The notes under the pieces: model-generated
Database searches by the model: none
What the model was told of the DNA's origin: nothing
The model's input: the letters and a program-made list of their open reading frames with translations, nothing else
NCBI GenBank assembly: GCA_943704425.1
Contig: CALSCP010000281.1
Coordinates: forward strand, 59,713-95,147
DNA length: 35,435 nucleotides
Direction: 5' to 3'
Origin: Ministeria vibrans ATCC 50519
Lineage: Eukaryota; Protista; Filasterea
Shown: piece after piece, positions 1,409 to 5,799 of the stretch
How the letters are laid out: every line of letters begins with the position of its first letter
How positions within the stretch are numbered: the first letter of the stretch is position 1
Position numbers and translations under genes: made by a program

Positions 1409-4400
1409 ATGGCCTCCCCAAACCACACCCCTACGAAGAGCTACTTTGGACAGGCCGTACGACGACACACGACAAAGCAAAGTGTTCCTCGCACTCTCTC
1501 CTTAAACCTTTCGTACTTTCACTTTCCTCTTTCGCAGAGTGAGACTGGCGAAGCGCATATCGAAGACAAGCTGTCGAGAACGCAGCGTGACGAGCTTCGA
1601 AAAGCCTTTGCTGTGTGCGATGCCGATGGTTCGCGATCCGGCTCGTTTTTCCAATTTTTGAACTTGTCCCCTCATTCTCGCTCCTACAGGCGACGGTCTC
1701 ATCACTGCGAGCGAGGTTGGGCGGGTGATGCAAGTACTCTCGCAATCAAGCGCATCCCGCCTGCCCACGGAAGCCGAGCTTGCCGCTTTGATGGCGATCC
1801 TGGTTCGCACTATTACTTATCTAATCGTACTATATTTGTGGATGTTATGTTGATCAAACTCTTCTGCACAGGATGTCGACGGCGACGGCGTAATCCAAGA
1901 GGATGAATTTATGAATCAAATGGCAGACTGGCTTGCAGACGATCAGTCGGTGGCCTCAGCAGAGGCCGTCACGACCGAAGAGGTAAGCCACGAAAAGCGC
2001 CTGTGTACATCTCATCCATCACTCGTTTCATTGCAGCAACGACACCGCTTGCACCGTCGTGTCTCGGAGTTCTTTTTGCAATTCAGCGTAGACGCACACA
2101 TATCAACGCTGCGTGGAAACCTCCAGACGTGGATGCAGGGCCAGATGTGGACCATGTACCAACAACAGCCGACGACTCTCTCGGCCTTCTCCGAGTCTCA
2201 GATTGCCCAAATAATCAGCAGCATCCAAGATACCAATGTCGCATCACTCGCCACACTTCTAACCTCTGACGAAGAGGTCGATATTGTGCGCGGTCTTGGC
2301 GAACTCCATGCTCTCCTTGAGATCACTATCGCATTGCCAACGCCTGCGTCGCGGCGCCCTCACGGCGACCTCCTTATTGCCTTCTTCTCGGCCCTCCATC
2401 CTCTCATCCCCACCCTAGCGTCCCTTCTTCTCACGGGTGTTCCCGAAGTTGAATGGCGCACCCTCGAAGTACTCAGTCGTCTACTGCCGGGCCCCAACGT
2501 CGCCTCAACGCCCGACGACCACTGGCTCCACCACGCACGCACTGCCTTCAAGACGTCCCTCGTCGAAGCCAATGGTCACCATGCTATCGTATCCCTTGCC
2601 AACTCGCAGTACCGTATGATTGTGCTTGCCTCCCTTGCTTGCATGCGCTCTCTTGCCCGTGATCATTCTGCATTCCGCGATGCTCTTCTATCCGCCGGTA
2701 ACGTTGCCCTTCTCAAAACATCTTGTTTGTAACTCGTTTTCATTTTGTTTGCCTTTTTTTTTGTTGTATGTTCAGGTGCCCTTGGACCAGTGACGCAGCT
2801 GTGCCGCGGTCTCTTGAATCCCGTCAACCTCCAAGTACTGCGCCACATGACCCGCACCATTGCGTTGCTCTGCGGTGAGACTCACGACCGCCCTGCCGAC
2901 ATCAACGTGACGCGTGAACTGCTTCCCGCCGTCTTTGAGCTGCTCTTTCACTTTGGTTCGCTCTACGAAGACGTTGAAACGCTGGCGAATGTCTGCTCGG
3001 CGCTTGTGTTTCTCTTGCCGGGTCACATGGACGCTGACGGTCGTGTGTCGCGTGCCATTGTGCAGCTGCTTGTGCATCGCGAGCCAACCGTTGTGCGCTG
3101 CGGTCTCTTTGCCATTGCCGGTCTTCTTGTAGACGATGCACTCACACAGTCCTTCCTCATGCACGGCCTTCTTCCCGCCATCCGCCTCATCCTTGTCTGT
3201 GATCAGCCTGCCCTGCGCTACAAAGCCTGTACTATTTGTGCTATCCTCTCAGGCGTCAAGGGCCGCTTCCGCTCCGTTCTCGATGCCGATGTCGTGCCCC
3301 ATCTCATTCGTCTTACCCTCAACGACCCCCCGACACATGCCGCCGCCCTGTATGCCGTCCGCTGTCTTGCTCGGGGTGGCATCCGCGAGTGCAAGTATGG
3401 TTTGAAAAAGTTCTCGAAATTAAAATGGCAGCTTCTTAAACGTGTGTGTTTGTAGAATTCTCGTGAACGAGTACAATCTCGTTGATGTCGTGACACAGAC
3501 ATTTGCCTTTTTTGAATCACAAGACTCGGTTCTTCACAATGTCTACAACTACAATGGCCCCACCTTTGATTTTGCAATGCTCAGTGATGCGGTCAAGTGC
3601 ATCAATGAGATTGTCGACACAGGTGACATAAGTGTCGACCACAATCACCACAAAAATCCCTTCATTCCTGCATTCACGTAAGCAGAGAGACAGAGGAGGA
3701 AGTGAGAAACTCAGTGATAGAGTGAAAGAGAGAAATTGAGAGAGAAAGTGTGTCAATAATGATAATAATAATAATAATGAGAATAATGAGATTAATAATA
3801 ATAATAATAATAATAATAATAATAATAATAATAATAATAATAATAATAATAATAATAATAATAATAATAATAATAATAATAATAATAATAATAATAATAA
3901 TAATAATAATAATAATAGGGANNNNNNAATAATAATAATAATAATAATAATAATAATAATAATAATAATAATAATAATAATAATAATAATAATAATAATA
4001 ATAATAATAATAATAATAATAATAATAATAATAATAACAATAATAATAATAATAATAATAGTAATAAAATAATTATTTTATAATATTTTGTGTGTGTGAG
4101 AGAAATCAGCGCGTGTGAAACGTGTGTATGTTCGTGTTCTTTTAGACCAAGTGTAATTGATCGTATTGACGCCCTAATGACGACGATGCGAACTGCTCCC
4201 GAGGCACTCCTCAGTGCTTTCCGCGCCCACTATGACAGCTTTGGCGCGTCCATCGACGACAGTATTCGTCTTCTGCTTGTGAAACTCCGCGATTGCTTCG
4301 ACGCCCGTCTCAAGGTTCATTTTTACACTACTTCCTATTACCTCGACGCCCCTTACACTCTCCCAATTTGATCTGATCGTTAGCATGGTGATATGAGCAG

Positions 4401-5799
4401 CGACACCCTCTCCGGCAAAGAAGCGTGTCACGCTCTCTTGATTCGCTGCTTTGACGAGGGCAGTCAGTCTGCAGGTCGTGTTTTGCTAAGGCTCAATCTG
4501 TCGTCTCCACTCGCGTCGTCGTCGCCCGCTCTCGCACTCGGTGGCCCTGAGTCGTCGCGCATCATGGAAGTTCCCCGTACCGTCTCGCTTTCCCAGCTCA
4601 GCACCGAGCTCAAGTACCAGCTCGGCCTTGCCGTCAGCATTGCAGTGCTTTTGCCCACAAACGAACTCATGGCCATCACAACGGACCAGGCCCTGCAGAC
4701 CCTCTTTAACACTCGACTGCAAGAAGGCGCCAAGTACGTTGCACTCACTATTGTGCCCATCACTATGTCCAATCCCGGTACCACAAGACAAAAGAAAGAG
4801 ATATAGAGGGAGGGAGAGGGAGAGGAGGGAGGGGGAGAGAAAAAAAGGGGTAGACAGAAAAATGAGAAAGAAGCAAAGTGATGGAGTGAGGAGGGCGAAA
4901 GAAACAAAGCGATAGAGAAAGAAGCAAAATGATAGAGAAAGAGAAATGAGAAAGAAGCAAAGTGATAGAGAGTGGAACAAAATAGTGATGGAGACAGATT
5001 GTATTTGACTGTCATGTGTATAGGCTCTTCTATGAGTAGCGTGTCTCTGCTCCAGCTCAAGACCAATGCAGGCATGCAACATGCAAGCGATGTCAACAAG
5101 TTTCAATTTTTCTCCGATCTCGTTCAGCACACACACTGTACGTGAGTCACTCGCAATTTGCATGTCTCTTCTCACTCGTTTGAATCCTTCTTACTTCCCA
5201 GTTGGCCTTCAAGAAATCAACGAACTCCTGTCGCACTGGAGCCAATGGGCCAATGACAATGGAGAGTTGGACATGGAGGGATTTCGCAAGGGACTCGCCA
5301 GTGTGGGCATTACCGACATCGTCATTGTGCAGGTGCGCCCCAGTGTGGGATTCAGATCTCACCCACTCACTTTGTGTTCCTGGTTAGGAGAATTGGTCTG
5401 CGTTTGACTTGGACAAGAGCGGCTCGGTGAGTTTCGCCGAGTTCATCATTGGTCTGTCAGCACTGACACGCGGTGACACGACCGAACGACTTGCGCTCAT
5501 GTTTCGAGCGTACGACATGGACGGTGATGGCTCCATCTCGCGCGACGAACTCATCCGCATTGTGGCAGCTGCACGACAGGCCCGCAATCAACCCGTCTCG
5601 CTCGTGGAAATGTACTTTGATGTAATTGGTATATGGCACATTCTCATTCTTGCTTGTCTTCTCGTCTTTTTGTAGTAATCGCGATGTCGACACACTCTTT
5701 GCGGCCGTTGACTCGGATGGCGATGGGCGCATTTCGCAAGCGGAGTTTGTGGCAGCCGCCAAAAGCAACAAACTTGGTCTGCTCGGAGTGCACGCGTAG
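1409..5799 (+). CDS. Multidomain Ca2+-binding protein: calmodulin-like EF-hand pair + importin-alpha-like ARM repeats + possible PB1-like segment + NCS/calcineurin-B-like EF-hand domain (~1006 aa)
   Basis: 13 phase-consistent exons: 1409-1456, 1538-1628, 1690-1802, 1872-1982, 2037-2697, 2776-3394, 3456-3677, 4146-4314, 4384-4777, 5024-5137, 5202-5332, 5388-5611, 5676-5799 (3021 nt, ends TAG). Canonical EF loops DADGDGLITASE, DVDGDGVIQEDE, DLDKSGSVSFAE, DMDGDGSISRDE, DSDGDGRISQAE. ARM-like helices such as AFRDALLSAGALGPV, ETLANVCSALVFL and SVLDADVVPHLIRL. Confidence 0.8.
3755..4066. repeat. (AAT)n microsatellite in intron 7 of the EF-hand/ARM gene, containing an N gap (3922-3927)
   Basis: About 300 bp of aat repeats, seen directly. 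Confidence 0.97.

Follow-up and report, generated by a model that had tools for sequence, protein, structure and literature searches.

An importin-alpha-type ARM solenoid between two kinds of predicted Ca2+ sensor: a Ministeria vibrans gene and its conserved eukaryotic family

Importin-alpha (KPNA1-7, and Srp1/Kap60 in yeast), a solenoid of ten ARM repeats, is among the best understood peptide-binding scaffolds. Calmodulin is a free Ca2+ sensor with two lobes, and calcineurin B (CNB) and the neuronal calcium sensor (NCS) proteins are small, stand-alone proteins with a myristoylated N-terminus and a four-EF-hand layout. Here we describe a gene whose product resembles all three. It lies on the plus strand at 1409-5799 of a 35,435-nucleotide stretch of the genome of the filasterean Ministeria vibrans ATCC 50519 (assembly GCA_943704425.1, contig CALSCP010000281.1, positions 59,713 to 95,147; the whole stretch is called the window, and positions are counted from its first letter). 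We establish the structure of this EF-ARM gene, its family membership and the identities of its domains. Judged by sequence, the window protein is the M. vibrans orthologue of a conserved eukaryotic family of about 1000 amino acids (aa), in which a calmodulin-like EF-hand pair is followed by an amphipathic helix, ten ARM repeats, a helical linker, a PB1 domain, a disordered linker and a calcineurin-B/NCS-like domain of four EF-hands. On balance, we favor a reading in which the locus is one gene, orthologous to this family, whose product probably acts as a scaffold or adaptor under Ca2+ control and not as a classical nuclear import receptor.

From the three forward frames, we rebuilt the locus independently as a gene of 13 exons separated by spliceosomal introns. 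All 12 introns are GT-AG; ten measure 54-81 nt, intron 9 measures 246 nt and intron 7 measures 468 nt. The exons sum to 3021 nt, or 1006 codons followed by TAG, with every join in phase. An earlier note, made from the letters of this DNA, had arrived at the same model of 13 in-phase exons and an open reading frame (ORF) of about 1006 codons. Searches and folds were made exon by exon, and exons were joined only for phase, length and counts of the EF-loop pattern. The gene is single-copy in the genome, whose assembly comprises 29.7 Mb in 2860 contigs.

The family was found with HMMER among 1.84 billion representative proteins; the seed was 1872-2696, which reads open without a break through exon 4, intron 4 and exon 5. 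This search returned 26 relatives, mostly of 930-1117 aa, in each of which the match begins at about residue 60, as it does in our model. When the relatives were compared with the window by tblastn, the matches were collinear from exon 2 through exon 13. The same was true of the closest named relative, the hypothetical protein CAOG_07924 (1043 aa) of Capsaspora owczarzaki; its identity to the window protein is 32% over the ARM exons, rising to 46% in exon 7 and to 57% in exon 12. CAOG_07924 and the other relatives are thus collinear with the window protein over their full length and share its order of EF pair, ARM repeats, PB1 and four EF-hands. All of these relatives are uncharacterized, and hence no function can be transferred from them.

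We then built a family profile hidden Markov model (HMM) from 17 of the relatives and ran it on the stop-to-stop segments of the window. The exons fall on the profile in order: exon 2 at positions 4-28, exon 3 at 25-57, exons 4 and 5 together at 59-341, exon 6 at 337-539, exon 7 at 538-611, exon 8 at 611/615-664, exon 9 at 735-797, exon 11 at 847-889 and exon 12 at 890-960. The independent E-values are 8.8e-53 for exons 4 and 5, 1.7e-21 for exon 7, 7e-6 for exon 8 and 4e-5 for exon 11. Exon 13 matches the profile only at the positions of the N-terminal EF-hands; by tblastn, it corresponds to the C-terminal EF-hand of CAOG_07924 (residues 1002-1039) and of another relative, P0016. The alignment covers 97 columns with 80% conservation or more across the family, of which the window protein keeps 65. 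As the end of exon 7 and the start of exon 8 meet at a single profile position (611) across intron 7, the gap in that intron hides no conserved coding sequence. Read from this homology, the locus is one real gene and the join between exons 7 and 8 is right.

The named sources of the relatives are Capsaspora (Filasterea), Mayorella, Luapelamoeba and Pyxidicula (Amoebozoa), Gefionella (a malawimonad), Lapot (Rhizaria) and Chloroparvula (a green alga), to which unnamed metagenome and transcriptome contigs are added. No animal, fungal or land-plant protein is among the 26 matches, which come from one single-sequence seed search and do not establish absence. A word-index protein search with the family alignment was dominated by EF-hand words and added CAOG_07924 alone; with the ARM region of CAOG_07924 the same kind of search found only that protein itself, and with exon 6 it found none within the length window, neither of which is evidence of absence. 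In the databases, the relatives are unnamed, hypothetical or labeled with best-hit names such as ‘PP2B regulatory subunit’. We found no description of this architecture, or of CAOG_07924, in the full-text literature. Thus, the earlier note's statement that no characterized protein has this architecture stands as far as our literature searches reach. The architecture is not peculiar to this genome, being that of a conserved family already present in the databases.

Exons 2, 3 and 4 (1538-1628, 1690-1802 and 1872-1982) encode an EF-hand pair resembling the N-lobe of calmodulin. The canonical EF-loop pattern matches the joined protein five times, at aa 44 and 85 near the N-terminus and at aa 898, 934 and 978 near the C-terminus. 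The two N-terminal loops lie 41 residues apart, and the family profile aligns with calmodulin residues 2-82, its N-lobe, with 82 bits. The single N-terminal exons score weakly because introns split the EF-hands; the best Protein Data Bank (PDB) matches of exon 3, for instance, are all to calmodulin residues 24-49, with E 0.17. The feature expected of a calmodulin-like pair, two adjacent canonical 12-residue loops, is thus present by pattern, and Ca2+ binding is predicted. As the EF loops are canonical in most relatives, Ca2+ binding looks ancestral to the family. The window protein shares with calmodulin the N-lobe-like pair and its two canonical loops, but calmodulin is free and has two lobes, whereas here one lobe is covalently joined to a large scaffold. 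In our comparison, the tethered calmodulin-like domain of CDPKs may be a closer likeness than free calmodulin.

Directly after the EF-hand pair, exon 5 (2037-2697) encodes a conserved helix, R-x3-H-x2-V-x2-FF-x-QF, then a spacer and ARM repeats 1-3. The residues that are invariant in the family in this exon (R, H, FF, G-P, P and K) are all kept in the window protein. In most relatives, a conserved basic R-K-R-K patch lies in the disordered linker that leads from the N-terminal EF pair to this helix; the patch is absent from both the window protein and the closest relative fragment, P0003.

The solenoid continues through exon 6 (2776-3394), which encodes approximately ARM repeats 4-8 of importin-alpha type, and exon 7 (3456-3677), which encodes the final repeats with a conserved F-x3-D-x-VL-x3-Y-x3-GP motif. 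With phmmer against the PDB, exon 6 matches yeast Kap60/Srp1 (E 4.5e-19 over 194 aa), and its leading matches are all importin-alpha or designed ARM proteins. The family profile, searched against the same structures, matches importin-alpha over ARM1-10 with E 4e-62. Single exons fare less well with Pfam: exon 6 reaches Arm at only E 0.2, and exons 5 and 7-11 gave nothing useful; exon 5 alone also had no meaningful match to PDB sequences. In the ESM features of exon 6, Arm clusters stand at 0.97, and all 17 profiled relatives carry both EF-hand and Arm.

Our test of the ARM fold rests on a model of the Capsaspora homologue CAOG_07924, made with AlphaFold2 (AF2) and the family alignment. This model has a mean predicted local distance difference test score (pLDDT) of 75.8, with 80-93 in the solenoid. 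In a Foldseek search of the PDB its top matches are importin-alpha only, with target-normalized TM scores of 0.72-0.80 over about 480 columns; the ESM Atlas held no usable match for CAOG_07924. The likeness to importin-alpha comprises the same ten-repeat solenoid, at about 20% identity in the Foldseek matches, and shared signature stretches that include the VREQA..ALG motif of ARM3. Within the M. vibrans genome, the closest paralogues of exon 6 are two importin-alpha genes, at 32% and 29% identity, both of which carry the Pfam importin-beta-binding (IBB) domain. They lie elsewhere in the genome, one on contig C353 (14350-16244), where different exons encode IBB and ARM, and the other on contig C2090 (40217-41326), as one open frame of 505 aa. 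By these sequence and fold comparisons, the ARM domain of the window protein derives from, or shares a recent ancestor with, importin-alpha.

The window protein nevertheless departs from importin-alpha in several respects: it has no IBB, its Trp/Asn ladder for nuclear localization signals (NLS) is replaced, an insert is added in ARM2, and the solenoid is flanked by EF-hand domains and PB1. Pfam IBB (PF01749) has no match in exons 2-13 at E<=1 (exon 1, at 16 aa, is too short), and the list of 25 families for the 17 relatives does not include it. A candidate IBB remnant in the N-terminal linker, with which some importin-alpha chains align from about residue 35, was dropped, as the stretch is of low complexity and lacks Pfam IBB support. 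When exon 6 is aligned with Kap60, the W/N of ARM4 becomes R/L, the W of ARM5 becomes S, the W/N of ARM7 becomes a gap or T followed by A, and the W/N of ARM8 becomes Y/C. The family consensus, compared with rice and Arabidopsis importin-alpha, retains only the Trp of ARM4, and the window protein does not keep even that one. The conserved ARM2 insert, of about 15 residues (P-G-P-R-I-A-x-T-P...H-P-x-K-M), is also present in the window protein, where exon 5 encodes it, and falls in what would be the major NLS site.

Behind the solenoid, exon 8 (4146-4314) encodes a helical linker and exon 9 (4384-4777) a PB1-like beta-grasp module. Of the 17 profiled relatives, 15 pass Pfam PB1 in this position, between the solenoid and the C-terminal EF domain. 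By these profile matches, PB1 is the fourth module of the family, one that was missing from the earlier finding. Exon 9 aligns with family HMM positions 735-793, inside columns 726-801, which Pfam calls PB1 in seven relatives, and hhalign gives it a probability of 72% (E 3.5e-5). Pfam itself, PB1 (PF00564) included, has no match on exon 9. We folded this exon as a single sequence, as an alignment with full-length relatives misplaced part of it onto the ARM2 insert. The resulting AF2 model is of low confidence (pLDDT 59.5) and has the element order b-b-b-a-b-b-a-b, which matches the strand and helix order of PB1 domains with one extra strand at the N-terminus. Its Foldseek matches to PB1 structures are weak (2bkf, TM 0.70; 1wmh, TM 0.75; E about 1e-2) and include the PB1 domains of NBR1, Par6/aPKC and MEKK2.

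Set against PB1 domains at large (p62/SQSTM1, NBR1, Par6, aPKC, MEKK2/3 and p40phox/p67phox), the beta-1 Lys and an OPCA-like motif, Y-x-D-x-x-G-D, are both present in the family consensus. In the HMM alignment, the family's Y-e-D-e-e-G-D-k-i-t-i-D corresponds in the window to V-L-L-P-T-N-E-L-M-A-I-T, with L-P-T-N-E in place of the acidic motif, and the beta-1 Lys position cannot be aligned reliably. Exon 9 also carries a Ser/Ala/Leu-rich insert of about 25 aa. As the OPCA motif is degenerate and Pfam is silent, front-to-back PB1 pairing through the acidic face is doubtful in the M. vibrans protein. Compared with its CAOG_07924-like relatives, the window protein thus lacks the RKRK patch, and its PB1-like module has an additional insert and a degenerate acidic motif.

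The C-terminal domain of four EF-hands is spread over exon 11 (5202-5332), a degenerate first hand; exon 12 (5388-5611), hands 2 and 3 with loops at aa 898 and 934; and exon 13 (5676-5799), hand 4 with its loop at aa 978 and the TAG at 5797-5799. Successive loops are spaced 36 and 44 residues apart. Pfam EF-hand_1 matches exon 12 (E 8.7e-14) and exon 13 (E 7e-7), and the hand in exon 11, before aa 898, has no canonical loop and no Pfam match. Searched against the PDB, exon 12 matches calcineurin B best (1.7e-16 to 7e-15), then hippocalcin (4.6e-14), frequenin, GCAP and NCS-1, and the family C-terminus aligns with calcineurin B over all four hands with 96 bits. A search of the same genome for a stand-alone calcineurin B, seeded by exon 12, gave only two weak EF-hand matches, inside very large ORFs. 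The domain shares the four-EF-hand layout and spacing of calcineurin B and NCS proteins, and its degenerate first hand is as in NCS proteins and unlike CNB. In contrast to these stand-alone proteins, however, it is internal, running from about aa 850 of 1006, and therefore has no N-terminal myristoylation glycine.

The two sensors are thus of different type and sit at opposite ends of the chain. The earlier note had described an importin-alpha-like ARM solenoid between two types of Ca2+ sensor, and the exon, profile and fold matches agree. Its finer points hold as well: five canonical EF loops, two N-terminal and three C-terminal, are what the pattern count gives; the N-terminus does align with the calmodulin N-lobe; the NCS/CNB character of the C-terminal domain and its degenerate first hand are seen in the matches of exon 12 and in the failure of exon 11 with both loop pattern and Pfam; and the WxxxN ladder it found missing is replaced in the window and family-wide.

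These features suggest how the protein might work, in a proposal whose Ca2+ switching, ligands and oligomerization we infer. Ca2+ bound to the five intact EF loops would open the hydrophobic clefts of both sensor domains. The opened clefts could then grip amphipathic helices, either the conserved R-x3-H-x5-FF helix beside the N-terminal pair or helices of partner proteins. Capture of a helix would alter access to the remodeled ARM groove, which would itself bind a linear motif other than an NLS. PB1 may add homo- or hetero-oligomerization, though its acidic OPCA motif is degenerate in this organism.

Before a function is considered, the integrity of the locus itself has to be weighed. Intron 7 (3678-4145) is by far the longest of the gene, at 468 nt to which a gap of undefined length is added, and holds an (AAT)~106 microsatellite and a 6-N assembly gap. 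One could accordingly suppose a mis-join of two genes, one with the EF pair and ARM repeats (1409-3677) and another with PB1 and the EF domain (4146-5799), a danger to which the earlier note had itself pointed. Yet in at least seven named eukaryotes both halves occur together in single proteins of 930-1117 aa, some of them transcriptome-derived, and one relative, P0001, is an uninterrupted ORF of 930 aa on a 3.3-kb contig. The family profile runs unbroken through the junction, both exons meeting it at position 611; no plausible start lies within exon 8, and the splice, in phase 2, is consistent. The collinearity of the relatives and of the family profile with the exons leads us to reject the two-gene reading as highly improbable; homology favors a single gene. 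Nor does the locus look like a decaying or non-functional copy, a reading that we consider extremely improbable. The degenerate OPCA motif, the lost RKRK patch and an identity of only about 32% to the nearest named relative in the ARM region would fit decay, but none of the 13 exons is interrupted or out of phase, each of the five EF loops fits the canonical pattern, the window protein retains 65 of the 97 highly conserved columns of the family, and the gene has no second copy in the genome. For annotation, this means that the locus is one gene despite the assembly gap, and that names such as ‘PP2B regulatory subunit’ are best-hit artifacts.

Given one intact gene, the product might instead be a genuine Ca2+-regulated import adaptor, that is, an importin-alpha isoform with EF-hands in place of the IBB. 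Its ARM domain is clearly of importin-alpha type, and the RKRK patch of most relatives sits roughly where the autoinhibitory basic cluster of importin-alpha lies. This patch is missing from the window protein and P0003, however, and without an IBB there is no known handle for importin-beta. Moreover, the Trp/Asn residues of ARM2-4 and ARM7-8 are replaced (the ARM4 Trp being kept by the family alone), the ARM2 insert remodels the major NLS site, and the genome has two ordinary importin-alpha genes, which makes such an adaptor decidedly unlikely. For the same reasons (the absent IBB, the replaced NLS ladder and two IBB-bearing importin-alphas elsewhere), we do not regard the protein as a classical import receptor, and the ‘nuclear import receptor’ option of the earlier note is disfavored. 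A calcineurin-type regulatory subunit on a scaffold, in which the CNB-like domain docks a PP2B-like catalytic subunit while substrates are brought in by ARM and PB1, is unlikely too. Calcineurin B is the best PDB match of both exon 12 and the family C-terminus, and P0001 is named automatically in one source as ‘serine/threonine-protein phosphatase 2B regulatory subunit’. Such a name is a best-hit transfer and not a test; the first EF-hand is degenerate, unlike that of CNB, NCS proteins score nearly equally, and an internal domain cannot carry the N-terminal myristoyl group of CNB.

A Ca2+-regulated scaffold or adaptor, encoded by one gene of this family, therefore remains the reading we favor, and several points weigh against it. 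Ca2+ binding, switching, ligands of the ARM groove and PB1 oligomerization are predictions for every member of the family. The assignment of PB1 to exon 9 of the window is weak (hhalign at 72%, Foldseek E about 1e-2, no Pfam match), and with the RKRK patch lost the behavior of the window protein may differ somewhat from that of its relatives. Exon 1, exon 10 and the precise joins of exons 9, 10 and 11 rest on splice signals and phase. That the solenoid is ‘clamped’ between the sensors is a statement about linear order, as the predicted TM score (pTM) of the AF2 model is 0.55 and the model suggests no reliable packing between domains. Finally, the protein could still have a non-classical role in nuclear transport.

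A bolder version of the scaffold reading, which we put forward only tentatively and with considerable doubt, is that the family constitutes a class of early-eukaryote Ca2+ effectors: an importin-alpha paralogue whose groove would be gated by two tethered sensors, with PB1 building scaffolds and a non-NLS motif as ligand. The sensors would possibly differ in Ca2+ affinity, and the motif would possibly be captured only during Ca2+ signals. If this were true, the spread over Filasterea, Amoebozoa, a malawimonad, Rhizaria and a green alga, together with the lack of animal, fungal and land-plant matches in our one search, would indicate an ancestral Ca2+ pathway that the lineages studied best have since lost. 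A conserved paralogue in which the importin-beta handle has been swapped for a calmodulin-like lobe, the NLS ladder dropped, and PB1 and a calcineurin-B-like domain added suggests an unstudied coupling of Ca2+ to motif recognition, and the patchy, very wide distribution of the family bears on losses from the early-eukaryote Ca2+ toolkit in animals, fungi and plants. As Capsaspora, a transfectable close relative of animals, has a member of the family, the idea is directly testable there.

Support is weakest for exon 1 with intron 1 and for exon 10. Exon 1 (1409-1456) supplies the start codon, the first ATG past an AT-rich spacer of about 120 bp, and 16 N-terminal residues. Intron 1 (1457-1537, 81 nt) and intron 4 (1983-2036, 54 nt) each have a length divisible by three and contain no stop, such that retention of either would be frame-neutral. 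Intron 4 is spliced, because the fragment P0003 (46% identical) has an 18-residue gap exactly at the site of the intron 4 read-through. Splicing of intron 1, which is in frame and without a stop, is a prediction. Exon 10 (5024-5137), a poorly conserved linker, is the least supported of the exons, called on splice sites and reading phase; the matching region of CAOG_07924 (800-862) is disordered in the AF2 model. As it measures 114 nt and has phase 1 at both ends, its skipping would also preserve the frame, and it could be a cassette exon. The intron before it, intron 9 (4778-5023), is purine-rich, with short GA-rich tandem repeats of periods 15, 16 and 20, which give rise to long spurious minus-strand ORFs (4464-5175).

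On either side of the EF-ARM gene, the window holds a gene or ORF on the opposite strand. Downstream and convergent with it lies an uninterrupted ORF of 1011 aa (6372-9407, minus strand), which was scanned as a whole and matches no Pfam family at E<=0.001. An Rfam scan of the window gave no match. Upstream, 69-1290 of the minus strand holds a WDR5-like WD40 gene that starts near 1286 and faces the EF-ARM gene head to head, and about 120 bp of AT-rich DNA separate the two starts (about 1286 and 1409). Within this WDR5-like gene, one intron contains extended (GA)n and (GT)n tracts (about 530-800), and a poly(A) run of about 38 nt occurs in another stretch (1003-1040).

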